Origin: Lepidodermella squamata
Lineage: Eukaryota; Animalia; Gastrotricha
Assembly (NCBI GenBank): GCA_047495785.1
Contig: JBLDXI010000036.1
Span: 1,116,001 to 1,180,000 of the forward strand
Length of the DNA stretch: 64,000 nucleotides
Direction of reading: 5' to 3'
Shown in pieces: positions 4,401 to 56,175 of this stretch (the stretch's first letter is position 1; every line of letters starts with the position of its first letter). The position numbers were made by a program, and so were the translations under genes. Under the pieces are notes generated by a model that did no database searches, was not told the origin of the DNA, and saw only the letters and a list, made by a program, of their open reading frames with translations.

Positions 4401-4402
4401 CC

Positions 4403-29900: not shown

Positions 29901-31739
29901 ATAATACAGAAAAACAGTGAAAATGAAAAGTTACGCACGGTCAGGAATTCGTTCAGTTGAAACTAAAAATATCTCACATGCGCCTGAACTATTTTTAGCT
30001 TCAAGCTTGATTATGCCGGTATTAAGGTTTCATTTGCCAATTTTCACCTTGCCTTGTAGCTTGCCTTGCGTCACACATTGCCATGTGCCAGTATCCGTGA
30101 ACTCGTCAACATGCGTGCCTGTTGAGCGTCTCTCGCGAAATCCGTACCTAGCTGGAATTTTGATGGCATGGGTGCCCAATCCGTTGCGAACGCGTTTCAT
30201 TGCCGTGATAAAAATTTTTTGAGATTCGATTGTCGACCTTCTACGAAATTTCTATGAAAGTCGTGGCGGTAACAGCTAGTAAAGCTTTCTGCTCGAATTT
30301 CTCAACACTTCGTAACGCTTAGTGACACGATGATCCGTTACATGCCGTTACATGCCGCTACAAGCCTTGGGTTTGGTAAACGTGACGCGTGACATGGCAC
30401 AGAGTGATATAGCTAATTTAAATTGCCTTCAAACGCTGCGCCGAGTAGAAAGGGTAAAAATGAATTTCCAGAAAATGAAACACAGCAGCACCTCAGCTCG
30501 GCTTTGGATTTGACATTTTTTCATGTTTGGGAATGAAGCGCCGCTCTGCAACAAAATAGGCCTGGAACATGATTTAGGATTAAGGAAATCTGATGTTTGC
30601 TTTGATAGGACAGTGGCCATGCATTGTTTTATTTTCTTCAAGATGTAAGAATTTGCCGATAAATAACATTCGGATTCATATTAGTTATTAAGATTTAGGT
30701 TAGCAAGCAGCTAGCATAATTTAACAGCGGTCAGTAACGGCCATGGATTTCAGCGCATGCCTGGAACTTGGAAAGCGGCGCAATTGATCTCAACGATACG
30801 CCTCTGGCCGAAAGTGAGAACTTGGTTGAATATACTCAAGCAAGTCAAATAATTATCATAGTGGTCTTGTGGATCTGCCCAAGATCTGTCAAAAGAACAC
30901 GTATAACTCTTAACATATATGTATTGCTGTTTACTGATCAGACACTTACCGCCCTAGGATGAATTGACCACTTTTGGTAATGGGCCGCTTTCCACTGCCT
31001 ATCAAGCCACCGTTGCTGTCGCCATAGAAACTCAGCTTGTCGCCATCTGCATCGAGCGTGATTGTTAGAAAATGCCAGCCATCTCCCGCAAGAGCACTAG
31101 TGGCGATTGAAGTTAATGTATCGCCGTACGGCCGAATGTTGAAATACGTCAAGTTGGCTGCTATGATTTTAAGCCCCAGAGTCGTTCCGTCAGGGGCGAA
31201 TTCAAGAATCGGTTTGCTCTGTGATCCCGGGTTGTCATTTGCGTTCAAGGCAAACAATGCGATAGTGAAACTACCACTGTCGAGCTTGACTTTGTCAGCA
31301 GTCACAACAATAGGATCACTAGAGGTGAATTCGAAGACCTGCTCACCAAAAGGGCCTAGCCATGTAATGCAAAAGGGTGGTCAATTCTTCGGGGATCCAC
31401 GTTTTGCCGGCGTGAATTTGCAGACACTTCTTCCTCACAATCCACAATTGTTGCAGCGTTAGAGCTCGATCAAAAATCGATAGACAAGCTATTTGACCTG
31501 GAAGACTCGAGTTATCCGCGAAATTCCTACCAATTTTCACTCTACTACTCGTCTTGATCGAATTTGTATTAAGTCTGTAAACAACCGAGTCGCAAAGTAG
31601 AAGGAATCGTTTCGTTGATTTATCGTATGTGGCGGCGATAAAGACCCACGGCAGAGACGGCCCATTTACTGCTTTACATTGCCACACATTCATCGAATCC
31701 CCACTACCTGCGAAAATAACATTTTTTTATTCAGAAGGA

Positions 31740-34887: not shown

Positions 34888-37800
34888 TAAAAGATTTTCC
34901 ACTAAAACACGATCAAAAATCTAAAAGCCTGTTTTCCGGCCTGGCTGAGCTCGGGAGAAGAAGGGGGCGAGACGATCCTATTTCCTTGAAAGTCGCACAC
35001 TGAATTTACCTTCTCGATAAAACAATACGTTCGTCGCGGGGTTGTAATATATTCGGAACAGCGCTTCGTTTTCATAGAACTCAAGAATAGGAAATTTGGC
35101 ATCGGAGAAATCCGCAAATCCAGCGTACAGGGAAATCGCGAATGAACTGTTGAGAATGAGCTTGCTACTTGCCACTTCCAAATAGCTAGCTGAACTTCCG
35201 ACAGAGAGTGCTGCGTTAGGATAGTCGAAGGGCCCGGGAACGAACGAGGCGGGAGAGTTGCCAACCAAGGCTGCTTCGATGTTATTGCCACTAATATCAC
35301 GTATGCCGTATTCCTGCGTGAGAGGGTAGAAAGCCATATTGCGTGGTAGACCGAAAGAAGTCTCTGCAGGTGGATTTATATTCTACTGAAAACGCGGATA
35401 AATAAAGGAAAACATACTCTGATTGCAGTTATCCAATGTGGCGTAAGTGGTGCTATCGGATTGCGTCTAATTTTTCAAATTTCGAAAAAACTGAATTAGT
35501 AAGAAGATGCCAATCATACCGAATTTTCCGGACAGCTATCTGTCACGGCTACGCACGTGGCCGACATCAGAAGCTGATTCTTGCAGAGCTTGTACTGAAA
35601 TATAAAAAATAACTTAATTTAATTAAGTTTTTCTGGAAAATTAAATGGGAACTTGGATGGGAATATTTGAAATTGCTGAATCAAATCATAAATTATATTC
35701 ATTATACCGTATACGACGTAATTTTCGTTGTGTTTTTATTTTCGCGATTCGGGTTTTCGAGCCTGTACTTAAATGTTCGTGGTTACATTGGGGAATTAAG
35801 AAATCCTAAACAATGGCGAATTAATCACGTAAAATCTATTTAAATTAGCTCATTCCCACACAATTCCACGCTAATTTTCGAATCACTCTATCTGAAGCCT
35901 AAAAGCTCCCTGAAATATAAAATTTGAGACGACGTTATAAACATTTTGCTCTTAACTTAACAATTAACAAATTTATAAATTAACAAAATTACCCGCAGTT
36001 CCATTTGACAGGCGTTGTGATTTTCTTCGAAAGACGTTGAGCTGCCATAGACTTTAACCTGGCAGCAAGAAATATTTCAAGACATATTTCAATTCTGAAG
36101 AGTATTCGTTATGACCAGCTAACCCGCGTTCCACTCGGAACAATTCCATAGCACTGCTTGCCCTTGCTTGTTTCGCACTGAACAGCTCTCTGTTGCAGCA
36201 TTATGGAAAAATATAAAAGATGGCGCGTCATTTAAAATGTTACTCCATTAAGGCAGTTTGCCCTGTTGGCGAATGTCGAAGACGAAAATTCTCGCGTTTC
36301 AGACCCAGCCTGACATCCTGTTGTCTCGAGGCGGCAATCGATGAAGCTCCCGTCAGACGTGCTGAAGCATCTGACATGCGGTTTCTCACTATCAGCAATT
36401 TGTACTAATAAGTGCATGATAAGCTAGTTAGTTAAACATTATTAGGGTTTGAAAGAAAAAACGTACAAGATGTGCCTGAGATGCAGAGGCCTAAACTGGC
36501 GTACGAGCCACCGCCTTCGAGCTATTAAAATAGAACAGCAATTATAAGGGTGAAACAAGAGAGCTAGAGAGGCTAAATTCTTTCAAACCCAGTTCTCAGG
36601 ACACGTGAAGTTGGATGGAATACATGTTTTCACCACTCCGCTGTCTGTGCATCGCTTGAAAGATTGATTCTGAAGATCAAAAGTTATAACATGTACTGAA
36701 ACTGAAAGATTAAGCGCTGATGAAATTACCGCAAATTTCGATAGCGCCGCATTGCAAGCGGCTAAACTGTCCTTCAGGGCGTTATTCCTGAACCAATCCA
36801 GCTAAAACATAATACAGTTATAACGAAATAGTTGATGGAGCTGTAAATTCACCTCGATTTCTCTGTCTTCAGCTGTTTCGCTGGTTAATTTGCAGTTGCC
36901 TAGGCCGGGATTGCAATGCGGTGTCAGGGCGCCGTATTTGTAGCACATTTTAGCATTCTGTGTTCGATACGGATCAACATAATTAGCAGTTGACCAGAAA
37001 CGTGAATATCAAGTTTCTTACCCCTGATCGGCATGATGGCAAATCTGGGAACAACGGGCCCCACTGGCGGATAAAAAAAAAATTTACAATCACATCGAAT
37101 GACGTATAAAAATGAATAGCTTCTCTTTATTCGAGTTTTTGTGCATTTTTTTTTAAATCAAATAAAAATACTTCAAACCCTTGATTTGTACGTTAACGTG
37201 AGCGGTCAAAAAATCTCAGAATTCTATCTAATGTGAATGTCCAATTAAAAAATTAGTCACCACTATAAATTTGTTGGAAACAAAATCAATAAAATTCTCT
37301 GACTTGATCGCAGGATGGCTAATAGCCGAGAACAATCACTCATACGTTTCATACATTCAAAATTACGGTTGAGAAGAGGCACGCGACGAATTTAGAGTTC
37401 GAAAATGAAAAAAACAGCGAGAAGAAATGGGCTTTTATTTAAGTGATCAAAATTGAAAAATGAGTGAATAAATGCTTAGAACTGGAATAAAACGATAAAT
37501 AAAAAAATATCCGAGAATTTTGAATCGCAACCATCTTCATTGCGGGATCTTTATCGCTCTAAGCACAGAAAATTTAATTTTAATTCCTGATTTTAGCTAT
37601 TTTTTTAACCCAAGTCCAATCCCTCTTGACGAAAAGCTGCGATTTATTAAAAAATTTAAAATAACCTGATTATCACTGTAGGTAATAGGTTACAATTGAC
37701 AAAGGGGAAAATTAAAAATTAGCAATTTTAAGGTTGAATAGTGATCAATTATTTAAACATTTTAAAATAAAATACCTGATACTCGGTGATAGGATCGCAG

Positions 37801-39201: not shown

Positions 39202-42200
39202 TTAGCGCATGCCTGGAACTGCGAAAGCGGCGCAGTTGATCTCGACAATTCGCAACTGGTTCACAGTAAGAGCCTGGTTGAATATGTTCAGACAAGTCAA
39301 ACCATCACCATACTGACTTTCCGGATCTTCCCAGGATCTGCAAGAAAGGCAATTAGTTGGAAATTAAGCTGTGTGATGATTAGACACTTACCGCCCAATG
39401 ATGAATTTACCGCTTTTCGTGATTGGTCGCGTGCCATTCCATATCAAACGACCCTCAACGTCATCATAAAAACCCAGTTTGTTGCCGTCCGCATCGAGCG
39501 TGACTGCTAGAAAATACCAGTATAGGTCATATTGAGAGAGGAAGGAAGCGACGAAAGTATCATCGCCGTACGGCCGAAGGTTGAACTTGCCGCCTGCTGC
39601 ATAGATCCCAAGTCCCGGCGTAGATCCGTCAGGGGCGAATTCGAGAATCGGCTGCTTCACATTAGGGTGTGCTCGGCTGGGAATCGAGGCGAAGAGTGCG
39701 ATTGTGAAACTACCAGTGTCGAGCTTGACTTTGTCAGCAGTCACAACAATAGGATCAGCCGATTTGTAAAGGAATGTGGAGTTGTCCATTCCGGAAGGGC
39801 CCTTAGTGGTAGACAGAGGCGTGTTAGGTGGCGTGGCATCGGCCTTAGGATCGACAACATCTTTGAAGTCAGAGACAAGCGGCCAAATAGCAGTGTTCGA
39901 GGGCAGAAGGGTTGTCAAAGCTTCGGGCTGCCAAGTTTTACCTGCGTGAATTTGCAGACACTTCTTCCTCACGATCCACAATTGTTCCAACGATAGAGCT
40001 TGATCGAAAACTGACACACACGTTATTTGACCAGAATGACTCGGCAAAACATTCTCGTCGCCGGCGAAACTCCTCCCAAACCTGATTTTAGTGCTCGCAA
40101 TAGCTGGAAACCCAAAACTCTCTGTCCAATAATACTTGCCGCAATGTGAAGATATTTCGTTAGATGTGCTGTTGTATGAAACGGCGATAAAGAACCATGC
40201 CCCAATGTTACAGCATACTTTTTTAAACGAATGTTCCATGTATTCTGTAAATAGTGAAACAATAAATATTATTTTTCAACTAATTTTCTTATATGATGAC
40301 TTTTAATTTACGTGAACAATTTGTTTACGTTAGAAAGGAAATTATAATGCTTGGGGCAGAGGGGTTTTTTTTATTCGCAAAAATAATACACGATGTAATA
40401 CACGATAATACACAAAATACAGCATATACTGTTCGAAGTGTTGCGAATAAAAAAAACCCTCTGGTGTTTACGGTTCGATAGCTTCATCTTAATCTTAATC
40501 TTGATCTTTAAAGACGACGTTTTTTATCTCACCATTCAAGATCGTGCGCGCGTTTGATCTCTCGTACTTTATTCACTCACAAGCGCTACAACTATAGCCA
40601 TTGTTGATGGGATTTAGTGAATGGTAGTTCATCCGCATCTTCAATTTTTGTAAAACTAACTGCACATGTTAGTGCCTATTTTTTCCTGCTTTTTCTGTGC
40701 TGCTGCTGAGTGATAAGAAGACAAAGAAAAAAGTCAGCTCCAAAGAGTTTTGTCTAAATTAAATAATTTGAATTTATATGGCCACATGCCACATTTTGAT
40801 TCTATAGAATCTCAGCCACGTCGAAAATTATCGTAAAAAATTGAAAGAAAGCAAAGAAATGTACACCAGGCTATCATGGATCTTGGATATATAGCTAACC
40901 AAAAAAATCAGCGTCACCTTAGTAACAGAGAAAAAACCTAGCGAGGCATTCAAAATACTGAAAACAATTGTGGAGGGGGCCTGATGCCACCTGGAAATGC
41001 GTGCACGGGAAAAATTTACTGTACATATTAATCTATCAATCTATCTTAATCTCGTTTGCATGCCGCTTAAGCGAAACTTGAAGGAAAAGTGGCCTGACTA
41101 CTTGGCGCGAGGCATCATCGGCATTTTATATGTAGTGATGCCCACAGTTTTTCCGGGACCAAGAGAGAATGATAGGCTTGAGTGCATAGACAACACTGTA
41201 ACAGATAGGAAACTAACGATCTTTCCATAGTGAATTTATTCGAGCTGTTATTGCAAAAAGGGCGGCACTCGACCGCTTTTTATGCCACCCAGCGCCCTAT
41301 CCGCCCATTATAATTTTAATTAATTTCAAAAATTAAAAAAGAGGCAGGTACCTCTTTTGAAAATTTTGATTTTCTGCTCATAAATACTTGAAGCGGCCCT
41401 CTATCTAATGATACCAGGCACACCTAGTGTTCCCATATGGATAATTTTCTAAAATTCGCCAAAAAGTGCTATATTTGGTGTTTTTGGGCAAAATTGCCAT
41501 TCTTCTGCCACGGTTGGCTCTTTCGGAAAAATTTTGAAAAATTTGAAAAAATTAGTTTATCCACGTTGAGAAATTTCTCTATCCGACGATATAAAATTTG
41601 TAGGGTAAATAATTTATTTCAATTTTCCGATTTTTTCCGAGCTCGAACATTTTTTATTTGCTAGAATATTTCTGAATAAAGCAACGCTGTGAGAGAATTC
41701 AAAGTCCAATATGCATAGCCGGAAAAAATCGGAACATCGAAATAAATTATTTACCCTACCAGTTGTTAGCGGTCTGATGTTATCGTTAACATAATTAGGA
41801 AATACGGCATCAAACTTACTCGAAACGGTTGTCGCATAATAGGGTGAGTAAGGATTGATCTGCATTCGCAATTGCGCTGCATCGTCGTAGAACTCAAAAA
41901 CCGGGAAGTAATTCTTGGAGAAATCCGAAAAGCCAACTGAAGGGTTGATATCCCTGACCTGGTTCGGGGGAAACTAATAACAGCGATTAGACTGAATAAT
42001 ATACAAGGCAGTTCAGTAAAGCAGATCAACTGATAACTTTATTGTCATGATTTAGGGCTTATATAGCCAAGAGGACGCCAAATTAGATGAGTTGTAATGA
42101 AGTGCGTCACGTGATATTACTGTCACGAGCGCTAGCTAGAATAATAAGAATGGACTACTGAACTAATAATTGGGACAGGGTACATAGCGATCCTCTCATA

Positions 42201-45200
42201 TGCCCCTCCCTTACAAGTAAACGTCTTACGTTTTTTTATGAGAACAAGCAAATTAAGAAAATCACGATGAATCACAGGAGAAAAATTCGAAGTTAGTCTT
42301 CAAGCATCTTCATCATAATCATCTTCTTCATGTGTTTTGCCATGTCATCGCCAGCTTGCTGTGGCTTTGGACGCCCCAGAATCCCCCAACAGCGGCTGGC
42401 AGCATGGCCAAGTTTGCCGCAATTCGAGCAAGGCAGGGCAGAGCGACGAAAGTAGCCAGCGCCAGAAGTAGAGCCAGGGCCGGGGGGAAGAAGAGCAGCA
42501 GGGGCATCCGGTACAGCAGAGGCGGTGGCGACAGAGGGCAGAACAGTGGCAGGAACAGCGAGGGGAGGAGCAGGCAGAAGGGCTTCCTTGAAGGCGGTGG
42601 CCATGGCCTTCACAAGGCGGGTCCTGATGGACGCAGACGTGACGTGCTGAAGGATCAGAGGGATGAACAACAGCTTCCAGTCTGGTTCGCCACTCATGGA
42701 GGAAGCAGCTTCGCCAACCTGGGTCCTGGTTAGTCGAAAGTCGAATTTGGCATCGAGGATGCCGTCGCAGGCAAAAGCCGATTGAGCTATTGTTTTTACG
42801 AGGAATTCGTTTTCGGATTCGGTTGCGGGCAGGGCTGCGCTGAGTTGGTGCATCTCGATATCAGACATGATGATTAAATAACTGAAATTCCTTTGAGAAA
42901 GCGAAGATAAATATGATTGAAACTGAGAAGGCAGGGTGGTTGGTTGAAATTCTGTGAATTTTTGAGGGTTTAAGTAGAGGATTTTCCAATTATTGGCTGT
43001 GTGGCGTAATTATTGATGACAAGGATTGATAGCCATCATTGTACGGATGCCTTATTGCGATCCGGAAATCATTAGCAATTTTTAAAAAAATTGAAATTTC
43101 TGAAATTTTAGTCAGTTCTGTAATGAGCTAGTGAAGTTCCATTATAATTAGGCCGAGATAACAAAATGATGCCAAATGATATTTACAGTAAAATTTGAAT
43201 TGCGAATCCCATGATTAACTTATAATGTCCATTATCATAGCAATTTTCCAACCGACAACACTTTGAAGACTGCTCGATGACCTTGATGTCAAAACCAATT
43301 TTCCCTATCCTGGTTTCATGCTTTTATTGCTCATAAATGAAATATGGCATAAACATAGTCTAGCGTTAGAAAAAGTGGCAGATACAAAGCTCAACCTGAT
43401 TTCTGGTGCTAGCCAGGAGTAGAGACACGTTTCCGGTACCAGATTTAAAATTTCAACGCTCAATTTTTCCATTCACACTGTCCATTAATCAACACTCATG
43501 GCGGATTGCGCAGATTCGTAGTATTTTATATAGGTACTGAGAAGTTAAGAATAATTTTATTCATTCCAAGAAAATTGGATTAATTTATGAAGTGCCAAGT
43601 GGCAAACTAATTATATTCACATTATGAAGAGAAGACCTTCAATTATTATTTTTATTCATTTATTTTTTGTATCACTGAAAATGCTGTTGACAAACGATGA
43701 AAACTTCTCTTTGGCAGAGGACAGCAAATTTGTGCCCTTATTTTCGATGACAGGATTTACATCAGTATTTCTGGCTTTCGATCTTGTATTATACTGGTGG
43801 GGAACAGTCTTCTGCCCATCAGTAGCCAATATATTCGGGATGGAATAGTCGATAGCTTCTTCTCCTTCTTCTGTCACTTCTTCGATAGGATGGAAGATCA
43901 GGTGTTCAGGCTGATTTTTCCACAAGTCAATTTTTGAGACATTTACAGTGTCCGTATTAGATTCGCCGAATTTCAGCCTGACAATATTAGCGTTATCCGG
44001 AAAGACTTCTACAACTTCGAATGGACCCGCGAAGCGGTCACCGAATTTGCCGTCGCGATCAATGACCTTTTTTCGTACCAAATCACCCACCTTAAAGGAA
44101 ATGGGTTTCAAATTGGCATCAGCGCGCTTTTTCCGTGATTCGAAGTCAGCCTTGGCCCTTGTTTGAGCCTCTTTCCAGATTTTTGACATGATTTTCATTT
44201 TTTCTTCAATATACTCGGATGGAGAGGTGGTTTGGGTAATTTTGTTGTCACCGCACATGAGATAAAGTGGATCCTTGAGCTTTCGCCCAAAGACCATCTC
44301 ATGAGGACTTACACCCGTGGCTTTGTGAGCAGTAGCATTAAATGCATATGTTACAACATCAAGGTTTTTGTCCCAGTTTTTGCGGTATTTACGCGCCATC
44401 ATTGCAATGGTGTCGGCCAGAACCCGATTATACCTTTCCGTTACACCGTCACCTTGAGGATAATAACTCGTAGTTCGGACTTTTTCAATACCCCACTTTT
44501 CACAAAAGTCTTTAATCAGGTCACTTTCAAATTGGGTGCCACGATCAGTAAGTAGAACGTCGGGTATTCCGTACTGCAAGAAATAGGACTCAAGGGCATC
44601 GGCCGTCGCTTCAGCTGTGATTGTTTTCATTGGTTTTGCTTGGGCGAAGTGGCAAAAATGTTCAACAATCGTGAGGATGTGAGCATTGCCCCTTATGGTA
44701 GGCGGGTTAATGGGGCCTACGAAGTCAATGGAAATCATTTCGAAAGGTTTCGATGCCATAAGTGATTTCATTCCGCCGCGTAGAGCTCGAGTTTCGGCTT
44801 TACGTTTTTGACAGAGGTCGCAACCTTGGCAATAATGCCTAATGTCCGATGGCATCAGTGGCCACCAGTAATGATCCCTGACACGTTTGATAGTTTTATT
44901 GCTACCAAAATGACCGCCGGAAGGAGCATCATGGCTTTGGTACATGACGTATTTTCGCCACGCTCTTGGAACAAGGAGTGAAAGTTCACCAGTAGGTAGA
45001 CGTTTGCACCAGGCATTTCCACGAGAGGGATCTTGTTCAAGGCGATCAAAATTACGCATGATACAATCAATTCGCTTCTTAGTTTCAGGATTATCAATTT
45101 CACCGATTTCTCGAGTGCCTTGTTTTTTGGAATTAATCACAGGGCCTATTTCAGGATCTGTCCATTGAGCCTGACTAAGCTCGTCAAAATTCCAGCTTAA

Positions 45201-48200
45201 TTCCTTCAAATAGATCAAATGGATGAAATCGGTTTCCTGATCTTCTGAGGGAAAGCATCTCGTAAGTGCATCAGCATATTGATTCTTTCCTGGGACATAT
45301 TCTAGTCGAAACTCGAATTCTTGCAACTCCAGCATCCATCGGTTCATTTGAGCATTAGGAGTTTCAAGGGTTCTGAGCGCAAGCAGCGGTTGATGATCAG
45401 TTCGGATCACGAAAGTTTGACCCAGCAAATATTGCCTGAATTTTCTAGCTACAGACCAGAAGATGGCATACGCCTCCTTTTTAATGGTGGCATAATGTCT
45501 CTCAGCCTGAGTTAGACTTTTGCTCGCTGATGCTACAAGTTTCAACTTGCCGTCTACTTCTTGGCAAAGCAAAGCACCGAGTGCCTCATTAGATGCATCG
45601 GTATATAGAATGAAGGGCTTGTTGTAGTTAGGAGGTGTGAGAACTGGAGGGTTCAAAAACGCCTTTTTAACCTTTTCAAAAGATTCTAACATCTTATCAG
45701 TCCACTTCAATTTGCCTTTGCCTTTGCCACCACCTGTGGCTGCCGTTAACGGTGAGACTAATTCAGCATAATCAGGCACGAAATTCCTTAGAAAATTTGC
45801 CAGACCCAAAAAGGCTCTCAGCTTCTTGATCGTTTGAGGGGGTTCACAATTTCGAATTGAACTCAATTTGTTGGGATCAGCGGCTATACCCGATTCAGAA
45901 ATTATTGTTCCAAGAAATTTGACCTCTTTTACAAGAAATCGACATTTCTGAGGCTTCAAAAGCATTCCTGACTTGAGAATCCTAGATAGGACTTCTCTTA
46001 GCCTTTCCAACATTTCTTCGATAGTATCGGCCCAAATGTTGATATCATCCTGTAAAACGACGCACGTTTTATATAAGAGTCCGTCAAGAAGTTGATTCAC
46101 ATAATTCTGCATTTCATTCGATGCATTTTTTATTCCAAATGGCATTCGAGTGAAGCAATACACACCTGATCTTGTTCGAAATGCCGTTTTTTCTTGATCT
46201 TCCTCGCGAAGGGGGATGGTCCAGTAGGCTGAACTAATATCTATTTGGCAATAGAATTTATGTCCAGCTGCGGCTTCGATCAGTTTAGGCATGTTCGGCA
46301 TAATTTGGGCTTCTGGTTTCAAAAACGGATTCATAGGTGAAAAATCAATCGTAAATCTGAGCTTATCGCTATCTTTTTTCTTCACCAAAACCGGATAAAA
46401 TGCAAATTGCGCATGAGGACATTCACGAATGATGTTATTCTGAAGCATTTCATTTTTGTGTTCCTCAATAATTACATCTTGAGTGGGCGAAAAATTCTTC
46501 GGTTTGATAACAAATTTGTTAGCATCAGCTTCAGGTAAGAAATCAATTTTATGGTGGACGCCTTTTGCAAGACCCACCTCGCCGCGCTTGGAAAAGCATG
46601 GGTAATTATCGATAAGATTCATTATTTTCGCTCTTTCCTCAACCGAACTGTCTGGCATCGTTTCTTTCAGAAACTGAGCCCAATCAAATTCCTTCTCACA
46701 CATCTGTGGAACACAAATGCGATCAATGTCCTCATTATTACAAAATTCATCTTCTAGGTCGTTAAACCATTGCTTGCTGTCATACGAGATTACAGGAAGG
46801 GATGAACCTTTCTCAGTTAAGTACATCGGCAGGTGGTAGAAATTCGTTGGAGTTTCACCGACTAGCAACACAATCTCACCCTTGGAAAAGCCGATCGATA
46901 CTTTGGGCATGTTTATGCACCACGTGGTATTCTTGTCATCGTCTTCAAATTTCAAATTGCCATTTTTATGTTCAGTGATAGCTTTATTATTTTTCAAAAA
47001 TGTGCGGCCTAGAATAATAGTATCCTTTAAGACCGTGCTAGCGATAATAAAAGTGTCCCTCAGCTTTTTTGTGCCGAGACTAAAAATAAGCGTGACTTGC
47101 CCTTCATGTGGCAGATCAGTGCCATTGCCGCATTTCAAAATGACTGGGCACTTTTCAATATTTACATCAGTAAGTTGTTTCACAACACTCATTGGAATCA
47201 AATTGTATTTACATCCCGTGTCGACAACACAAACTTTCTCAATGCTTCCAGGAAGAGTTATCACATAAGCCAGCATATCACGACTGCCTTCAGCTTCAGG
47301 TGATAAAAGGAAATTATTTACATTAGAAGGGCTCTTTTCGACCTGAGGCACATTCATCGACCGGGTATCATCTAGTTTTTTGAATTACTGGTCGGTTGGT
47401 TGCGAGGCTTGGGGCAATTACGCTCAATGTGGTAGCGGTCACCACAGTTAAAGCACCCACGAATACTAGGATCACGCCAGTTTGAGGTTGCAGGTTGATA
47501 CTGCTGATTATTCCCACTGACTGCAGTTTGAGGAAATCTCCTATTTTGAAACGGAGCATTAGGAGTGTTGGAATAATTAGGCATCTGAGGCCTGCTGGGA
47601 AACGCCGAAGGTGGCGGATTGAAAGCATGAGGGTGGTTGTAGTACACCTGAGGAGCCTGTGTTGAAACTTGAGGAGTATCAAATTGTTTTGAAGCTAATT
47701 GTTTCTGAAAATCAGTGAACATATTCTTCAGGTCTGACACTTCACTTGCTAGCTTCTTGTTTTCCGTTTCAGCATTGGTAACAGAAGAAGTGACCTTAGA
47801 AGGTTTAGGATCCTGACCGCTCAATTGACTCGCAGTAATTGGGCCACTTAATTTAGCCTGAGTATTCTTTTTTTCCCAACTCCGATTCTCATTTTCAAGA
47901 AGCTGAAGAACCGCCGCATATTCAATGTGGGGATCTTTGTCCCATGCTTCAATCAGAATAGTTTGGATTTTCTTATTCGACATGCCTCCAATTAAGCATT
48001 CTGTGGCCCTGTCACACGCATCTCGTCCACCATTTGGGTAGCCGATGGTGACGAAAGACTCTATCTGTGAGATAAACACATCGATAGTATCATTTCCCTG
48101 AATAAGGTTTTTCAAGAAGACACGGGCAGTGCCCTGAGATACGGCAGTGCCTTCTGGCTGGCAAAGTCTCGCAATTGTCGCATCGAGAGATACGACTCGC

Positions 48201-51200
48201 TTGTTCAATTCTTGAGCGATAATTTCAGCTCTACGCTTATCGACCATTTTTTGGATGATCCTCAATTGCCTTAGAGCGCCTTTGATGTTAAAGACCTCCA
48301 TGTAATACTTTACATCAGAGATCCAAGTATTGAAATTGTTCTCATTGGGGTCAAACTTTTGCACCTTATCGTGAAGCTTTAACTCACTATTAGAGATTTG
48401 CTCGTCATCCGAGTCCGATTCCTCACGATTGATGAGAATCGACCTTCTATAACTGGCCATTTATGTTATTTTTATTTTTATTTTTAATAGTTAGTGGCTC
48501 AATGAGTCAACACAAGATAGGAGAAAAAATAATTCGACTGGAATTTCCTTCAGTCGTCACAAAACAATTAGACTGGAATAGCCTTTTTCGCAAAATAATA
48601 ATAATGGGCTGGAATTTCCTTCAGCCTTGAAAAATTAGCTGGAATGACCTTCAGCTTTTATTAAACTTTGACTGGAATGGCCGTCAGTCACAATACTTAT
48701 CAACTGGAATTTCCTTCAGTTGCCAGAAACAGCTTACCACTGTTTTCTATTAAACTTACCTACTGTTGTGAGTGGATGGTGGAATCGATCGTTGATCGAG
48801 CGGAGTCTCGGCGCCAATGAAGGGTTGATATCCCTGACCTGGTTCGGGGGAAACTAATAACAGCGATTAGACTGAATAATATACAAGGCAGTTCAGTAAA
48901 GCAGATCAACTGATAACTTTATTGTCATGATTTAGGGCTTATATAGCCAAGAGGACGCCAAATTAGATGAGTTGTAATGAAGTGCGTCACGTGATATTAC
49001 TGTCACGAGCGCTAGCTAGAATAATAAGAATGGACTACTGAACTAATAATTGGGACAGGGTACATAGCGATCCTCTCACCAACATACAGGGAGATTGTGA
49101 ATGAACTATTGGGAAGTATTGATACGAGCTTGCTGCTCGTCACTTCCAAATAGCCGGTTGAGTTATCGACAGAAAGCGCTGTATTAGGGTAGTCGAACGG
49201 GCCGGACACAAACGAGGGCGAGGAGCCAATGAACGATGATTCAACGTTATTGCCACTAACATCACGGATGCCGTATTCCTGAGTGAGAGGGAAGAAAGCC
49301 AGCGAGCCAGGCAAGCTGAAAGGAGTCTCTGCAAAAAGACGGAGATCATTCTCAAGAAACCGTTAATTGCTGATTAAACGCACGCTGTTTGCAATCCTTC
49401 AATGTGGCGTACGTGGTGCTATCGGCTTGCGTCTATTTCGTCAAATTTCGATATTCATAACTCGTATCAATAGAAATTCATACTCACCAAATTTTGTGGA
49501 CAGCTTTCCGCTAAGGAAACGCACACGGCCGCCATCAGAGGCTCATTCGTGCAGAGCTTGTACTGCAATAAAAAGAGGAAATTTTAGATATTTTCAAAGA
49601 TAGGGATCGGGAATCTCGGAATCCAATGTGGGATCTATTCTAGGAACCTAGATTCCATTGCTGCCTCGTTCCAGGTTGCCTTTCAACTTCTTTAAATTCT
49701 TAATCAGTACTAATTCGGCTGATAGATTGGCTAACAACAGTCAACCATGAAAATTGCAAATTTAGGCTCAATTCCGGACCCCGCTTAGTTAGAAAATCAA
49801 TGTTAGAAGCTTCCAGGTGCTATGGTTAGAGATCCACAGAGATGAATAAGTTTTCGCGCTACAACATAGAGGAGGTCAGGCGACGCGACGACCTGACCTC
49901 GCAAAATTTCTAAATTCCCCCCACAAATGCGTTACCATGGAAAATATTTTAAATAATTCTAAATTGTATTTAATTAAATATTTTTTGTGAGAATTTAATA
50001 AAATTATTGAACTTGCGTGAAGAAAATGAGGGAAAAGGCGGAATTTTTAAACTTTTACCTGCACGGAACTAAGCGGGGTCCGGAATTGAGCCAAATTTAG
50101 ACCCATTTTTTTTGTTTATGCCACTATAATTTTCGACCCTCCTCTGGAAATAAGACAAAGCACTCTGGGGTTGGGATTAACATCGCAAAATGGAGAGTTA
50201 GGTGGTTACGTTTTGTTGCGCACGTGTTCCGAGTCTTGGGTGGAGCGTGCTTGAAGTTAGCGGGGGTTGAAAATTATAGTGACATGACACTCAAAGCGCG
50301 GTACTACGGTAAGGCATTCCTGGATGTTTAGGCGCACCTTTGTTCCGATAGGAACGAAAGTTCCCACCCAATTGCCATTTTCCGCGCCCTTTCCCCTTTC
50401 CCTCATTAATTAAATGGCGACCCCCCCGAATCTCAGAAGGGCAAGGCTATATAGATCGCACAACCTTGCAAGTTATATCAATCGATAGCCCTTGACGAGG
50501 AGAGCTTAACAAAGATATTCCAGCTATTTTCGCCGGACCATCTCGAAGAAATCGTTAAAAAACTGAATTTGACCTACTTTTTCTGGGGGCATTGCCCAAT
50601 TTAAACTAGGTCAATTTGGTGCTATTTTTAGCTGCGCAATCACTAATATAGGGCCAGTACTGCGCACTTCACTAATAATAGAAATATACTGATCGCGATT
50701 TGGCCTTGGCCAGTGTTATTCGAGCTTGCATACAATTTGGCCTCCCTCCTCGGGGAGGGAGGCTTACGAAAGTTCATTGCTGACAATCATTTTATTGAAG
50801 ATGTATCCTCGTGAACAATGGCTTATTTTAGGTCACGTGACTGGGACAAAATTAAAAGCAAATTGAAAATCACACTATAGTTTAATAGATAATTTGATAT
50901 TGGGCAATCATTCGTCATTCGATCGGCATAATTGCTTCTAATATTACAGTTTTTCGGTTTATTCAAGTCATAGAGGCAGCTTATTTCCTCCCCTGTATTC
51001 GAGAACGCGATTGATCGCGTTGTATCATAGCTACCAAAGGCTTGCCCAGAGCATTAGCCATCGAAATCATGGAAAGCCATTAGCTCTGCGGTTATACATT
51101 GAACATTTCAATTGTTCCGTTAGGTGGACGCGAGATTTTAGATTCCAGTTGCTCTTCAGTGTAAAAACGGCAAATTAAGCACAATTCTTATCTCATTTAG

Positions 51201-54200
51201 ATCCATGTTTACGGCGTTCGCTTCTGCAGGATCCGATGTGTGCCATTCGAGAGTAATGGAGTATAACAGAGAGCGTTAAGGTGTTTAATCGTTGTTAATA
51301 TTACACAAGCGAGGCAAACGACTAGTAAAGCCATCAAAAGTATACAAGATTAGGCGGTGCGAATCAAACGATTGTCCCGATATGCGACAGCATAGGAAAT
51401 TTCGATCAAGTTTCGAAGGCTTGCGCCAGCTGATTATTGTACATTCAATCAAGCAAAGGTGTCGTTTTCTGTTTGTGCACTGGCATAACATAAACAACTT
51501 TGCGTAACTTCACGTTTTAACAGGTAACTTTGCTTAATTGAAGCTAAGTGATCGAAGGATGACAACAAATTGAGAATTGCGTAAGCCCGACTGGGGTTCA
51601 TTAAATCTCCCTGTCTAATTTCTAAGAAACCAGAGAAGCTCTATGGGCCCCTTCCATAGACATCAAAATCAATAGACATTCAATTAGACGACTCCGGTCT
51701 ACACAACTTTCCCTACACAACTTAGGTATAGCTATCGCTGTATACAAATTCAGATTGAAGTCGTGATTTTGGAGGTATGGATGGTCATTAGCCTTGCAAC
51801 ATACTAATGATGCCTTGCAAATAACTATCAAATAACTATCAAATCGCAGAAGGCGGGTCTCCTGTCTCCTCGACATACGACATTGGTGGAACCTGCGGTG
51901 AGCCGGTGTTGATCGGCCGTTTTATGGAGGGTGGGGCTCAGGCCCTTCCTTATGAAGGGAGGGCGTTTTGGGAGAGTTGGTTAGCCCTTTAAATCCGATC
52001 ATCTCCTACAATTCGCCTTTTTACTTTGAGCTAGCAATTCACTAGCACAAACAGCTGGATTTCTCTTTTTCAAATGATGCGTTATCATAATTATAAAGTA
52101 ATGAATAACAAATACCGTTGTCTCCATCTTGCAGGCGTCGTGATTTTCTTTGAAAGATGTTGAGTTGCCATAGACTTTAACCTGTAAACAAGACGTTGCG
52201 TTATGCAATTAAGCAGCGGTTCAAAAAATTGTTGTCTCGTATGGCACAGTAGTGTCCTATGAAAATGGCTCGTATGACACCTTGGTAAAATGACTGAAAT
52301 TTCGTTCGGAATGGGTACAATTTGAGCTAAAAATTGATCAGTTCAAGGTGAAGTTAGAAGTTAGTTAAGAAGTTAGAAAGCGAAGAAATTTTCAGAATTG
52401 CCCATGTTTATGGCTGGTTGTTTTCCGATTTTTAGTCAGAAAATGGTCAACAAATGCCCTGTTTCTTAGTCGGAATCTATTCTTGTCCGTCTACCATTTT
52501 TAGGCCCATAGAACACTTGAAATTTGGCTAAGTACACGAGTTTCCGGTTTTGGAAACGCTGCATATAATGCTGCTAAATATCTTTGGCTTCGCTGAATAA
52601 CCGATATTTTCAGGCTTATTTTCATGGAATTGTTTTAGCTATCGACAAAGCTCAGTCCAAAATACATCATTTTAATATTAACATAGCGTCATTGAATCGC
52701 TTGAACACCTTAACAAACGTTTACCCAGACAGAAATAAGTAGACCTAGAGCTCAGTAGATCTGAAAAATACTGGCTCAAAATGCCCTTTTCATGACCTAT
52801 TCCGGAAATACAGTAGTTTTGCGTTAAGCCGGACCGATTTTTAGTGAATTTAACGTCAGAAGGTTCGGCTTAGACCAAAAGTTTAGAAAAAATCGCACTT
52901 TTCATTCTGCGACAGGGTGGCTTTGGTGGGATGATTATTTTTACCCTAGAAAACAACTGTTTGAAATCGTTGTTGAACCTAAAATTCAGCTCAGCATCCC
53001 CATTTTGTCAACTCCAAGTAGTTCATTGATGTAAAATGCCTTTAAATAACTTGAATACATATGTGTTCATAAGCAGTAATTTTTCGCCCTGGTCCGGCTT
53101 AAAATTAGGCGGATTTGCATTAAGCCGGGCTGAATCGCATAGCGAGGGTCTTAACGCAGAGTGGAGTTTGTTAACTTTTTGTGATGTCGCGCATTTTTCG
53201 AAATAACAAATATAGAATTGTCGTCAAAAATATAGGTCGAGTAGCTTTGACAATTCGATATTTTACGGTATACAGTGCTCCCTCGATATAAGCAAGGGGG
53301 CGGGATCCACGCGATTGCTCTTATCGAGGGTTGCTCTTATAGAGGGCTGTTAAAGAGCTAGCGATGAATCATAAGTGCGTCGCCAGGTTTTTTTCTCAGT
53401 TGCTAGGGCGACGTTTATTTCACTGGTTAGCCATATCCAAGATAATCTGGTGTTCATGTAATGATTTTCGATGTGGTAGATAGTATTTGATATGCAAAGT
53501 TTGATCATTTGAATTCCAATTGTATTTTAAGCTGGCTGACATTTTTTAACATTTTTCTAATAATTTCTGAAAAATATTTCATCGAATAATTTCTTCATTT
53601 ATGATCAGGACACTTCGGTTACGCCAATTTACCCAGCGATAGTTGAGAGCCATCTAAATCGAATGCGATATTTTAATTTAATTGATCCAAATTTGGAAAT
53701 TTGAAGGTTAACAAAGCTTGAAAGCCTTCATTAGAATTAAATGTAGCAATTCCATTTGGTTCAAAGACAAACCATGGATACACTAGCGGATAAGCGAACA
53801 ATGTTAGGTAAAATTCGGCTAGGAGCCTGTGATGCCTAAAACCTATCCAAGGTTGAAACGCATTTTTTCTCATAAATCCGTGAAAAAACTGAAGGACTCG
53901 GGGCGAACATTGCTTGGAAATCTTGTTGGAAGTTTGCTTGAATCTTGAGTCGAAGCTGCATCCTAACTTCATTTTTTCAGAATTCTATAGAATTAAAACA
54001 GATTTACGGCATTACGATTCCTCGTGATGTGCTTTGATGGAATACAACAGCTTGAATGCCACCTTTATCTGTTCTGAAAACTTCGGTAGAACAGTAGATA
54101 ATCAGCGGTTTGCTTTTTATCGCTTTTTAAATAATTTTTCTAGACCCGTAGCGTAATCACTATCATTCTTTAAAAAATCTCATCAATGGCTAGTAGTAGT

Positions 54201-56175
54201 GTTTGTGAATGAAAAATACGAGAGAGCAAACGCGCGCGCACGATCTCAAAATTGAAGCCAGTGCTGAGATAAAAAACATCGATCTGTAAAGATGGAGATC
54301 AAGAGATCACGAGGCGCCGCCGTCCAACTGAAAAATCGAAAACGCCAGGAGCAGTGTTACAATTCTGTTGCTAACGTAAACAAATTCTTCATGTAAATTA
54401 AAAATTATCATGTAAACAATTTTAATTTGTCGAAAAATAATTTTTTAACAAATAAAATCAACGGGATCCAAAAAAAGTTGCTAGTAGCGAGGGATTGCTC
54501 TTATCGGGGTTGCTTATATCGAGGGAGCACTGTAACATTCGTAAATCGTTCATATCTGAACTCGCCGCACTCGATTTACTCATCGCAACTCGCCTCCGGC
54601 TCGTTCCGACTCGTAAATCTCGGGCGGCTCCGTACAGATATAAACGTTTTACTCATGTCATACCATACAAATATAAACTTTGAAGCCTATATACTCCTAT
54701 TTCCTATGAATATCAGCCTATTTTTATATCGATCGACTCCTGGTTAATTTGATCTTGAAAGCGGCATGAAAATCTCACGATCCTAACAAGCTCACAAACC
54801 CCAAGTTTTCACTAAGTATTCAAAGGCAGGATCTAAGAGCATCGATCTTGTATATGTCTTAATTTTACAATTACGATCACTATAAAGTCGAAACCATACG
54901 ATAGATCTACCTAACGAAATGATTCACTCACCCGCGTACCACTGGGAACAATTCCATAGCACTGATTGCCTTTGCCTGTGATACATTGAACAGCTCTCTA
55001 TTAAAGCATATGAAAACAAAATGATGACATAGCAGATTTCTTCTAAATGTTTACCCCAGCTAGGCAGTTAGCTTTGTTGGCAAACGTCGCAGACGAAAAT
55101 TCTCGCGTTTCAGACCCAGCCTGGCAGCCCGGTGTCTCAGGACGGCAATCGATGAAGCTTCCGGTGGACGAGCTGAAGCACCTTACATGCGGCTTCTCGC
55201 TTTCAGCAACTTTTACTGTTAACGGCATGATGAACTAGTTAGATCAATGATCATAAATCGAAAATAACTCACGTGATGTTCCAGAGATGCAGAGGCCTAA
55301 ATTAGCGTACTGGCTGCCACCTTCGAGCTATGCGGAAAGAATAGAAATTACGATCAGCTCGATGAGCACCAATTGTTATAAACCCAGTTCTCGGGACACG
55401 TGTAGTTGACTGGAACACATGTTTTCACCACGCCATTGTCCGAGCATCGCTTGAAAGACTGATTCTAAACATTAAAAAGACGTGAAATACAATGAATATT
55501 CTAGCGCTGATGAATTACCGCTAATTTCGATTTCGCATTATTACATGCGGTCAAACTTTCCTTCAGCGACGTATTTCTGAACCAATCAAGCTAAATAATC
55601 ATTTCAAATAAAATTAAAATAACACAGTAGATAGCGCTGAAAGTTTACCTCAATTTCTCTGTCGGCAGCCGGTTCGCCAGATAATTTGCAGTTGGCAAGG
55701 CCGGGATTGCAACGTGGTGTCAGGGCGCCGTATTTGTAGCACATTTTAGCATTCTGTTTTTTATTTGGATAACAATAATTAAAAGTAACGAGACCTGATA
55801 TTCAACTTCCTACCCCTGATCGGCAGGATTGCAAATCTGGGAACAATGGGCCCCACTGTATTCAAGGAAATAAATATATAATAATGATAGCGGAGTGGAA
55901 AATTGAAACGAATTCAAGATTAATTTGATGAAAATTGTTTATTGTTTCAGGCAATTTAAGGAACTAATTTTGCAATTTAAGATTCAATTTTCCTAATCCA
56001 AATTAAAATTCTAAAATAAAGATACCTGATACTCAGTGATGGGATCACAGGTAGGGTTGTTATCGCGGCACGAAGCGAAGGCGTTGTTGGTCACCTGGAA
56101 GCATCGCTTGAACACCTGGCCCGAGACCTGGCTGATACAAAAGATCGAGATGACTGTTGAAATAAATGCTCTCAT
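39202..56175 (-). CDS. Paralogue A3: secreted protein, 6 four-Cys modules + 2 ConA-like/LamG domains; LamG1 exon interrupted by a Gypsy element
   Basis: ATG at 56175; exons 1-8 at 56175-54932, exon 9 ~52181-52116, exons 10-12 ~49563-49080, continuation 41936-41820, then 40244-39392 and 39337-39202 (VPGMR*). The empty site reads SLYVGFSDFSKNYFPVFEFY, matching A2 SLYAGFADFSDAKFPILEFY. Confidence 0.8.
41184..41760. mobile_element. CATAGAC-family element, left half
   Basis: Begins catagacaacactgtaacagatagga and is collinear with 18317-18900. Confidence 0.75.
41938..42198 (-). repeat. 3' LTR
   Basis: Identical by eye to 48818-49078; preceded by the polypurine tract. Confidence 0.97.
42293..42868 (-). 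CDS. Gypsy ORF3 (191 aa), non-env accessory protein with a CCHC zinc knuckle
   Basis: Intact sense ORF between pol and the PPT; CSNCGKLGHAASRC; Pro/Ala-rich linker; TTTCAG acceptor ending 14 nt upstream of the ATG (42882); no signal peptide or C-terminal TM segment. Confidence 0.8.
   Translation of the reverse strand: MSDIEMHQLSAALPATESENEFLVKTIAQSAFACDGILDAKFDFRLTRTQVGEAASSMSGEPDWKLLFIPLILQHVTSASIRTRLVKAMATAFKEALLPAPPLAVPATVLPSVATASAVPDAPAALLPPGPGSTSGAGYFRRSALPCSNCGKLGHAASRCWGILGRPKPQQAGDDMAKHMKKMIMMKMLED
43656..47381 (-). CDS. pol: Pol polyprotein (protease, RT, RNase H, integrase), probably reached by -1 frameshift
   Basis: VVDTG protease; DISSAYW, RMPFG and LQDD RT motifs; TDAS and TDHQPL RNase H; H..H..CDLC, D-D-E and GPF integrase motifs; uninterrupted 1233-aa ORF from 47357, open upstream to the slippery site. 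Confidence 0.95.
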   Translation of the reverse strand, partial: KKLDDTRSMNVPQVEKSPSNVNNFLLSPEAEGSRDMLAYVITLPGSIEKVCVVDTGCKYNLIPMSVVKQLTDVNIEKCPVILKCGNGTDLPHEGQVTLIFSLGTKKLRDTFIIASTVLKDTIILGRTFLKNNKAITEHKNGNLKFEDDDKNTTWCINMPKVSIGFSKGEIVLLVGETPTNFYHLPMYLTEKGSSLPVISYDSKQWFNDLEDEFCNNEDIDRICVPQMCEKEFDWAQFLKETMPDSSVEERAKIMNLIDNYPCFSKRGEVGLAKGVHHKIDFLPEADANKFVIKPKNFSPTQDVIIEEHKNEMLQNNIIRECPHAQFAFYPVLVKKKDSDKLRFTIDFSPMNPFLKPEAQIMPNMPKLIEAAAGHKFYCQIDISSAYWTIPLREEDQEKTAFRTRSGVYCFTRMPFGIKNASNEMQNYVNQLLDGLLYKTCVVLQDDINIWADTIEEMLERLREVLSRILKSGMLLKPQKCRFLVKEVKFLGTIISESGIAADPNKLSSIRNCEPPQTIKKLRAFLGLANFLRNFVPDYAELVSPLTAATGGGKGKGKLKWTDKMLESFEKVKKAFLNPPVLTPPNYNKPFILYTDASNEALGALLCQEVDGKLKLVASASKSLTQAERHYATIKKEAYAIFWSVARKFRQYLLGQTFVIRTDHQPLLALRTLETPNAQMNRWMLELQEFEFRLEYVPGKNQYADALTRCFPSEDQETDFIHLIYLKELSWNFDELSQAQWTDPEIGPVINSKKQGTREIGEIDNPETKKRIDCIMRNFDRLEQDPSRGNAWCKRLPTGELSLLVPRAWRKYVMYQSHDAPSGGHFGSNKTIKRVRDHYWWPLMPSDIRHYCQGCDLCQKRKAETRALRGGMKSLMASKPFEMISIDFVGPINPPTIRGNAHILTIVEHFCHFAQAKPMKTITAEATADALESYFLQYGIPDVLLTDRGTQFESDLIKDFCEKWGIEKVRTTSYYPQGDGVTERYNRVLADTIAMMARKYRKNWDKNLDVVTYAFNATAHKATGVSPHEMVFGRKLKDPLYLMCGDNKITQTTSPSEYIEEKMKIMSKIWKEAQTRAKADFESRKKRADANLKPISFKVGDLVRKKVIDRDGKFGDRFAGPFEVVEVFPDNANIVRLKFGESNTDTVNVSKIDLWKNQPEHLIFHPIEEVTEEGEEAIDYSIPNILATDGQKTVPHQYNTRSKARNTDVNPVIENKGTNLLSSAKEKFSSFVNSIFSDTKNK
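47372..48460 (-). CDS. gag: Gag (362 aa) with C-terminal CCHC knuckle
   Basis: First ORF after the PBS; CFNCGDRYHIERNC. Confidence 0.92.
   Translation of the reverse strand: MASYRRSILINREESDSDDEQISNSELKLHDKVQKFDPNENNFNTWISDVKYYMEVFNIKGALRQLRIIQKMVDKRRAEIIAQELNKRVVSLDATIARLCQPEGTAVSQGTARVFLKNLIQGNDTIDVFISQIESFVTIGYPNGGRDACDRATECLIGGMSNKKIQTILIEAWDKDPHIEYAAVLQLLENENRSWEKKNTQAKLSGPITASQLSGQDPKPSKVTSSVTNAETENKKLASEVSDLKNMFTDFQKQLASKQFDTPQVSTQAPQVYYNHPHAFNPPPSAFPSRPQMPNYSNTPNAPFQNRRFPQTAVSGNNQQYQPATSNWRDPSIRGCFNCGDRYHIERNCPKPRNQPTSNSKN
47375..47381 (-). promoter_or_regulatory. -1 ribosomal frameshift heptamer A AAA AAC
   Basis: Gag ends TCA AAA AAC TAG; the -1 frame reads AAA CTA GAT GAT ACC CGG TCG ATG into pol and has a TAA just upstream, confining the shift to this site. 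Confidence 0.85.
48535..48722 (-). repeat. Array of six ~20-nt hairpin repeats in the Gypsy 5' leader
   Basis: Sense-strand core CTGAAGG-NN-ATTCCAG every 30-36 nt, with variable but complementary flanks; one copy degenerate. Confidence 0.9.
48818..49078 (-). repeat. 5' LTR
   Basis: Identical by eye to 41938-42198; minus-strand TATATAA and AATAAA (48918-48923). Confidence 0.97.
49765..50092. mobile_element. MITE in an A3 intron
   Basis: 26-bp TIR ggctcaattccggaccccgcttagtt; 7-8-bp flanking duplication (c)aaattta. Confidence 0.85.
50119..50284. mobile_element. Small MITE-like element
   Basis: Imperfect TIR tgccactataattttcgaccc / gggttgaaaattatagtgaca. Confidence 0.55.
53273..54532. mobile_element. 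Tc1/mariner-pogo (Tigger-like) element in A3 intron 8
   Basis: TA|cagtgctccctcgatataagcaa ... ttgcttatatcgagggagcactg|TA; a related inverted fragment lies at ~40290-40575. Confidence 0.85.

Follow-up and report, generated by a model that had tools for sequence, protein, structure and literature searches.

A young gypsy retrotransposon with GT and AG borders in a coding exon of a Lepidodermella squamata gene is probably a disruptive insertion

Introduction

Transposons inserted into exons can be removed from transcripts, in whole or in part, by splicing at fortuitous sites at or near their ends, giving leaky alleles, as has been known since 1990-1996. Here, we describe a related configuration in the gastrotrich Lepidodermella squamata, within a stretch of 64,000 nucleotides (assembly GCA_047495785.1, contig JBLDXI010000036.1, positions 1,116,001 to 1,180,000 of the forward strand), hereafter the window. 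A Ty3/gypsy element of 7,141 bp, on the same strand as its host gene (sense), lies within exon 11 of a gene that we call A3, and its borders carry the dinucleotides GT and AG in such a way that removal as an intron would keep the reading frame. We consider it probable that a recent gypsy integration in A3 exon 11 produced a disruptive (null or hypomorphic) allele in a gene family that evolves by birth and death.

The 412 element in an exon of Drosophila vermilion is reportedly removed by splicing, and the same is said of Tc1 in exons of C. elegans and of Ds in a maize exon. The papers linked to these cases, in the same order, are Fridell et al. 1990, Rushforth and Anderson 1996, and Giroux et al. 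1994, all cited in the excerpt of PMC2586383 used here.

More recent work concerns introners. In the excerpts of these sources used here, the textbook mechanism of introners is to take bases of their splice sites from target-site duplications (PMC11282704), long terminal repeat (LTR) retrotransposons account for ~12% of the confidently classified examples, and a Copia family is described in which full-length and solo-LTR copies are both functional introns (Gozashti et al. 2025, PMC12130899). Furthermore, in dinoflagellate introner-like elements, the splice dinucleotides span the boundary between duplication and element, and class 12 has a 5-nt duplication (excerpt of bioRxiv 10.1101/2020.10.14.339549).

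Results

The element interrupts a coding exon of A3

A3 has 13 minus-strand exons; this model, with all its splice sites, is predicted from conservation among paralogues, on the sequence alone. The features of the gene are as follows (window coordinates).

39202-56175, minus strand: host gene A3, 13 exons, 740 codons at the empty site, from paralogue alignments
56175-56026, minus strand: exon 1, with the ATG and the signal peptide
55855-55814, minus strand: exon 2
55753-55649, minus strand: exon 3
55590-55519, minus strand: exon 4
55464-55384, minus strand: exon 5
55327-55273, minus strand: exon 6
55215-55055, minus strand: exon 7
54997-54932, minus strand: exon 8
52181-52116, minus strand: exon 9
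49562-49488, minus strand: exon 10
49326-41820, minus strand: exon 11, with the element inside
49084-49326, minus strand: upstream part of exon 11, 81 codons, ending ...SFTISLY
41820-41932, minus strand: downstream part of exon 11 (...GFSDFSKNYFPVFEFYDD...), with the natural donor CGA / GTAAGT at its end
40244-39392, minus strand: exon 12
39337-39202, minus strand: exon 13, with the stop codon

In this model, every exon is open, all borders are GT-AG, the phases are consistent, and the stop is placed as in the paralogues. Nine small Cys-rich exons stand between the signal-peptide exon 1 and exon 11. The introns measure 170, 60, 58, 54, 56, 57, 57, 2750, 2553, 161, 1575, and 54 nt, with 8 of the 12 counted at 54-60 nt, and the two longest carry DNA transposons.

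At the empty site, the reading frame of the host stays open (...NSSFTISLY / VGFSDFSKNYFPVFEFY..., also ...NSSFTISLY / VGFSDFSKNYFPVFEFYDD...). The exact insertion point is unbroken in three paralogues of the window, located near 35.3, 24.8, and 13.4 kb, and likewise in a distant database homologue. Because the frame is continuous at the empty site and the paralogues are unbroken, the element sits in a coding exon.

The element has two LTRs of 261 nt each (48818-49078 and 41938-42198, minus strand), which are 100% identical and constitute the sole long direct repeat within 41000-50000. Their ends are of the TG...CA type (TGAGAGG at the start, CCCTTCA at the end), and the element is flanked on both sides by a perfect 5-bp target-site duplication, GTTGG (49083-49079 and 41937-41933).

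49079-49083, minus strand: target-site duplication copy 1, GTTGG, whose G at 49079 forms the proposed donor GT with the LTR T at 49078
48818-49078, minus strand: 5' LTR, with TATATAA from 48945 and AATAAA from 48923
41938-42198, minus strand: 3' LTR, with AATAAA from 42043, whose last A at 41938 forms the proposed acceptor AG with the first G of duplication copy 2
41933-41937, minus strand: target-site duplication copy 2, GTTGG

All the junctions were read on the minus (gene) strand. The upstream one is ...CTGTATGTTG / GTGAGAGG, that is ...TATGTTG / GTGAGAGG, which places the donor in the context TTG / GTGAGA. The downstream one is ...ATCAACCCTTCAG / TTGGCTTTTCG, and on the acceptor side it reads CCCTTCAG / TTGGC, or, in longer form, ...CAACCCTTCAG / TTGGC. 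The internal LTR junctions, GGGGCATA / TGAGAGG and CCCTTCA / TTGGCGCC, form neither GT nor AG.

The GT...AG edges of the insertion follow from arithmetic

The segment 49079-41937 has a length of 7,143 nt (3 x 2,381), while the insertion adds 7,141 + 5 = 7,146 nt. Its removal would leave +3 nt (GTT), turning YVGFS into YVVGFS with one extra Val, and the predicted precise join is ...CTGTATGTTG^TTGGCTTTTC. A solo LTR would yield an intron of 1 + 261 + 1 = 263 nt, starting with GTGAGAGGATCG and ending with CCCTTCAG. The would-be intron is 2 nt longer than the element and the insertion 5 nt longer, so 3 nt are left over in every case. The remainder is generic to any TG...CA element with a 5-bp G...G duplication and not particular to the A3 insertion, and exact restoration of the messenger RNA (mRNA) by GT-AG splicing is impossible here.

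The rule also holds in antisense, since TG...CA reads the same on both strands. Indeed, the antisense form of the A3 LTR would read G / GTGAAGGG and ...CCTCTCAG /, thereby avoiding the LTR poly(A) signal. Among the 2,166 exonic 5-mers of A3, 114 (5.3%) are of the GNNNG type, and base composition alone predicts 4.2%; therefore, approximately one exonic insertion in 20 would have GT...AG edges. The edges are thus unremarkable, being the product of arithmetic and of a 1-in-20 coincidence, and one case is uninformative on selection.

A first-pass annotation of the same DNA had proposed a sense gypsy insertion in a coding exon, flanked by GTTGG and ending in TG...CA, whose splicing would remove 7,143 nt and add one Val, with a 263-nt intron after reduction to a solo LTR and with internal LTR junctions forming neither splice site. 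The order of the pol domains, the open frame at the empty site, and the unbroken paralogues bear out the insertion; duplication and LTR ends were read directly at both junctions, the arithmetic was confirmed, and the internal junctions are as described. Its remark that A3 has no other lesion agrees with the predicted 13-exon model. Its restriction of the rule to the sense orientation was needless, TG...CA being self-reverse-complementary.

The splice signals at the junctions are not singled out from their competitors

Splice sites were scored with log-odds matrices built on 34 donors and 38 acceptors of the A3 family, which are partly paralogous, not independent, and themselves predicted from sequence. 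The host signals are low in information: donors include GTATCT, GTAAAC, GTAATT, and GTTTAT, and acceptors consist of YAG after a T-rich tract. The junction donor scored 5.1 bits versus a median of 7.2 for the real sites (leave-one-out), which places it at the 29th percentile, and it ranks 27th of the 413 GTs between exon 11 and exon 12. From -3 to +5, its context, TTG / GTGAGA, is identical to that of the A3 exon-10 donor, TTG / GTGAGT, and its intron hexamer is that of a paralogue's exon-11 donor (GAG / GTGAGA).

The junction acceptor has a host-like TTCAG core preceded by a T-poor tract: the T content from -20 to -4 is 0.24, tying with the lowest of the 38 real sites (median 0.53). It stands at a percentile of 5-45% among these sites when the scoring window spans 6-15 nt, below the median throughout, and of 0% when it spans 18-22 nt. 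A statement that the acceptor falls under all the real sites was dropped, as it depends on the scoring window, and a control based on ranks among decoys was used instead.

The control set included A3 introns 8, 9, and 11 and A2 intron 11 (1,575-3,302 nt; A2 is a paralogue described below), with their own and the homologous sites left out of training. In these long introns, donors ranked 1-12 and acceptors 2-24 among 121-246 decoys. On the same measure, the candidate intron has donor rank 23 of 339 GTs and acceptor rank 49-198 of 400 AGs. The matrices pick out the working sites of long introns and do not single out the junction sites.

Competing signals are found both inside the element and near its borders. 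No donor-like site of the region scores higher than TAG / GTAAGT at 48759 (9.8 bits), which lies inside the element, as do the best acceptor-like sites, at 48065 (10.7 bits) and 43537 (9.5 bits). The exonic GT located 8 nt upstream of the junction donor, CCT / GTATGT at 49087, scores 5.9 bits and beats it, and the AGs at 41992, 42158, and 41974, within the last 220 nt of the LTR, outscore the junction AG. The alternative pairings are mostly out of frame: the net change is -5 nt for 49087 joined to the junction acceptor and +58 nt for the junction donor joined to 41992. Furthermore, the sense LTR contains TATATAA at LTR position 134 and AATAAA at 156.

The earlier description of the upstream site as a good donor is fair in view of its near-identity to the real A3 exon-10 donor, although it stands only at the 29th percentile of real donors and the 49087 GT scores higher. 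Similarly, the likeness of the acceptor to the host's own is limited to the TTCAG core, with a T-poor tract and a position at 5-45% of, or under, all 38 real sites depending on the window. The caveat about competing signals was justified, as the LTR AATAAA and stronger internal splice sites are present.

The element is young and apparently autonomous

Between the LTRs, the element contains the following features, in the direction of transcription.

48800-48816, minus strand: primer-binding-site-like sequence TGGCGCCGAGACTCCGC, TGG-initiated, 1 nt past the 5' LTR, read directly
48754-48762, minus strand: donor-like TAG / GTAAGT, intron start at 48759, 9.8 bits, just past the primer-binding-site-like sequence
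47372-48460, minus strand: open reading frame (ORF) of 362 aa in the gag position, no Pfam match
48065, minus strand: acceptor-like site, 10.7 bits
43656-47357, minus strand: pol ORF, 1,233 aa, uninterrupted, with protease, reverse transcriptase, RNase H, integrase zinc-binding, and integrase core domains
43537-43555, minus strand: acceptor-like TTATTCTTAACTTCTCAG / T, directly past the pol stop, 9.5 bits
42293-42868, minus strand: third ORF, 191 aa, with a CCHC zinc knuckle (CSNCGKLGHAASRC)
42203-42212, minus strand: candidate polypurine tract AAGGGAGGGG, ending 4 nt ahead of the 3' LTR, read directly

The Pfam matches of the pol protein are gag-asp_proteas (aa 44-123, weak), RVT_1 (325-486), RT_RNaseH (578-681), Integrase_H2C2 (796-854), and rve (869-967). 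The order of the domains, with protease, reverse transcriptase, and RNase H followed by an integrase that comes last, unlike in copia, assigns the element to the gypsy type. The nearest pol relatives are 24-36% identical (word-based homologue search among 5.8 billion proteins), and no record in public assemblies matched the pol protein exactly. The 64-kb window holds no second copy of the element, no solo LTR, and no LTR-derived intron; an Rfam scan of the window found no RNA gene, and TGGCGCCGAGACTCCGC has no matched transfer RNA (tRNA). A human origin of the DNA was rejected in view of the 54-60 nt typical of its introns, its intact gypsy element, and the lack of close relatives in the databases.

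No difference was found over 2 x 261 LTR nt, which corresponds to a 95% upper age bound of ~0.4-0.6 million years at rates of 1.0-1.3e-8 per site per year, and to one about tenfold longer at 1e-9. The rate of 1.3e-8 is the figure quoted for fungal LTR elements in the excerpt of PMC12130899 used here. The identical LTRs, the perfect duplication, and the intact gag, pol, and third ORFs indicate that the insertion is young. The element is apparently autonomous, and its family may be active.

The donor at 48759 and the acceptors past the pol stop delimit a candidate subgenomic spliced RNA. TAG / GTAAGT at 48759 may be the element's own predicted splice donor, and the donor and acceptor layout suggests a spliced subgenomic RNA together with an unusual placement of the zinc knuckle.

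A3 belongs to a tandem family that is losing members

A3 is predicted to encode a secreted, Cys-rich, LamG_3-type protein of a tandem family. The pieces of A3, searched singly, gave no Pfam match, and the domain is proposed from its relatives: PF13385 (Laminin_G_3) is found above the cut-off in the paralogous ORFs 23503-24837 (1.6e-9) and 31343-31693 (3.2e-6), and under the cut-off in the paralogous ORF 30946-31305 (2.7e-4). The A3 exon-12 ORF is 44-57% identical to these matching or near-matching ORFs. In an exhaustive HMMER search of 1.84 billion cluster representatives, this ORF (283 aa) had two weak matches at E ~1e-4, P0080 and P0081, both bearing PF13385, one in a JGI metagenome contig and the other in assembly GCA_927797965.1.

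In exon 12 of the paralogue A2 (30950-31707, minus strand), 89 nt are deleted mid-exon compared to A3, causing a frameshift, with a stop following ...HYMARPFW. This paralogue is probably either a pseudogene or the gene of a one-domain protein. The tandem family is already losing members, and the frameshifting deletion in A2 shows that such a loss is evidently tolerated.

Other observations concern the members of the family. The 5' exon block (exons 1-7) occurs a third time at 1160-2920 (minus strand), at the low end of the window, with ~80% identity to A3; therefore, the tandem array extends past the four copies of exon 11. In the 24-kb paralogue (23503-24837, minus strand), the short intron that follows exon 11 has no stop codon and keeps the frame, so exons 11 and 12 read as a single ORF of 444 aa. 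Exon 11 starts with CAGAG in 4/4 paralogues (49327-49331, 35362-35366, 24817-24821, and 13459-13463, minus strand); because the reading phase needs the second AG, these are tandem acceptors, 2 nt apart. The donor of A3 exon 2 (55813, minus strand) reads GGG / GTAGGA versus GGG / GTAAGA in A2 and in the copy at the window start, being weakened by a 1-nt deletion.

Several repeats lie in the introns. An element of 1.26 kb at 53273-54532, in A3 intron 8, has perfect terminal inverted repeats starting CAGTGCTCCCTCGATATAAGCAA and is TA-flanked; it looks like a non-autonomous transposon of the Tc1/mariner type and helps to explain why this intron measures 2,750 nt versus ~67 nt in A2. A3 intron 9 contains a short repeat (49759-50098) with a 32-nt inverted pair at 49759/50067. 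A dispersed repeat of ~530 nt is present in introns of different paralogues, at 41185-41716 (A3 intron 11), with relatives at 17415-18033, 18317-18848, and 18665-19326. These short intronic families look like miniature inverted-repeat transposable elements. Elsewhere in the window, an ORF at 4366-5178 (plus strand) has weak endonuclease/exonuclease/phosphatase matches and is probably a fragment of a non-LTR retrotransposon of the long interspersed nuclear element (LINE) type.

Discussion

The insertion probably disrupts A3

The sequence is best explained by a recent integration that disrupted A3. The integrase would have duplicated a 5-bp site with a G at both ends, and the TG...CA LTRs would have supplied the rest of the GT and the AG found at the borders. 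For transcripts started at the host promoter, the expected main outcome would be cleavage and polyadenylation in the 5' LTR; the other main outcome to be expected would be the splicing of exon 11 into the stronger sites within the element. In both cases, the protein would be cut short at ~395 aa, with only part of its LamG domain. The ORF 49012-49314 continues past the host sequence, and the product of premature termination would have ~372 host residues and 23 codons from the duplication and the LTR before the stop. The AATAAA lies ~20 nt past the TATA box, at about the predicted start of the element's own transcript: the 5' end of the element RNA may lack all or part of the signal, and a host read-through transcript would include it in full. 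This reading of the signal draws on the way in which retroviruses and LTR elements avoid polyadenylation in the 5' LTR. The allele would be null or strongly hypomorphic, and tolerated thanks to the redundancy of a family already in decay; the insertion is probably polymorphic. Precise removal at the junctions would be possible in principle, though predicted to yield no more than a minor product.

Several points weigh against this explanation. The training sites of the matrices, as stated above, are few and related. The junction donor closely matches the real A3 exon-10 donor. We infer, rather than observe, that read-through transcripts would use the LTR poly(A) site. The lack of other defects in A3 fits a very young null allele and a still-functional gene alike. 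A3 already processes transposon-bearing introns of 2.5-2.8 kb, so length alone is no bar to splicing. Lastly, the extra Val would lie where a beta-strand motif ends and a segment of variable length among the homologues follows, so the protein with one additional residue could fold.

One alternative is that the element and one G per side are removed as a GT-AG intron of 7,143 nt often enough to give a working protein with the additional Val, with LTR-LTR recombination possibly reducing the intron to 263 nt later. The exact position of GT and AG at the borders, the frame-keeping remainder of 3 nt, the real-donor match from -3 to +5, and the TTCAG core found in real host acceptors all agree with it. 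The same is true of the otherwise intact A3 with its kilobase-sized, transposon-bearing introns, of the variable loop length of the homologues past the insertion point, and of the LTR itself, which in the solo-LTR state would hold no donor stronger than the junction one; full-length and solo-LTR elements are also known as introns in other species (excerpt of PMC12130899). However, the acceptor ranks 49-198 among 400 AGs, against 2-24 in real long introns, the exonic GT at 49087 outscores the junction donor, and at least three AGs in the last 220 nt of the LTR outscore the junction AG, besides the stronger sites inside the element and the AATAAA of the sense LTR. Moreover, there is one copy and no LTR-derived intron in the window, and the configuration is expected by chance in ~5% of exonic insertions. 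We therefore regard this alternative as unlikely. Intron gain in progress, as proposed in the first-pass annotation, is a legitimate possibility which, on the sequence evidence, appears to be the less likely outcome. Its fullest form, in which the element is a working intron of age zero with a functional Val-extended protein, GNNNG insertions in either orientation are a recurrent source of in-frame introns, and the 263-nt solo LTR is the mature form, is more doubtful still.

Between these two outcomes there could be a mixture, with transcripts mostly truncated or mis-spliced and a few percent spliced at or near the junctions, making the allele a hypomorph and not a null. The low-information host signals, which leave several GT/AG pairs of similar strength near the borders, would allow it, and 412 in Drosophila vermilion, Tc1 in C. 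elegans, and Ds in maize are reported precedents. Set against this, the alternative pairs are mostly out of frame; we consider such a mixture improbable, if somewhat less so than regular precise splicing. Finally, repeats commonly cause misjoins and the LTRs are identical, so the element could have been placed in the exon by a repeat misassembly. This explanation was rejected and seems very improbable, because a misjoin would not create a perfect 5-bp host duplication and the two host halves abut to the nucleotide where the paralogues are continuous.

On the present evidence, the locus shows a gypsy family that looks active and an insertional hit of an ordinary kind in a tandem family that is redundant and partly decayed. 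If precise splicing were true, it would offer a rare glimpse of how intron gain begins with an autonomous LTR element of full length, as well as a simple rule, whereby TG...CA ends and a 5-bp GNNNG site always leave one additional codon. The main value of the case lies in this rule, which can be cheaply tested in any genome with RNA sequencing data.

Comparison with known systems

The element resembles the Ty3/gypsy elements (Metaviridae) in its TG...CA LTRs, 5-bp duplication, and pol with protease, reverse transcriptase, RNase H, and integrase in this order; the TGG-initiated sequence next to the 5' LTR and the purine run before the 3' LTR are candidates for the primer-binding site and the polypurine tract of such elements. 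It differs from them in that its sole CCHC knuckle is in a third ORF after pol, its gag ORF has no Pfam match, no chromodomain was detected in the element, and its pol relatives are only 24-36% identical.

Like the 412, Tc1, and Ds cases, it is a transposon inside an exon with candidate splice sites at its ends; unlike in those cases, where splicing was reportedly demonstrated, removal from A3 is possible on paper only. Exonic transposon splicing, splice sites borrowed from duplications, and LTR or solo-LTR introns are all already published. As far as the excerpts of PMC11282704, PMC12130899, and bioRxiv 10.1101/2020.10.14.339549 used here extend, they contain no explicit statement of a one-codon rule for TG...CA ends with GNNNG sites, and this rule is a corollary of published principles.

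As far as introners are described in these excerpts, the A3 element shares with them the position in a coding exon, the splice dinucleotides at the borders, and the recruitment of duplication bases. Unlike introners, which occur in many similar copies and were shown to be spliced, it is single in the window, is known from DNA alone, and would leave 3 additional nt in the mRNA. The dinoflagellate elements, as presented in the excerpt, are short and exist in hundreds to thousands of spliced copies, whereas the A3 element is a single autonomous gypsy of 7.1 kb with its own promoter and poly(A) signal. In both, the terminal G of the duplication and the first base of the element make the 5' dinucleotide, and the 3' site is drawn from the duplication: the A3 insertion, with G+T(GAGA...) and (...TTC)A+G, follows the same construction principle as the dinoflagellate elements.

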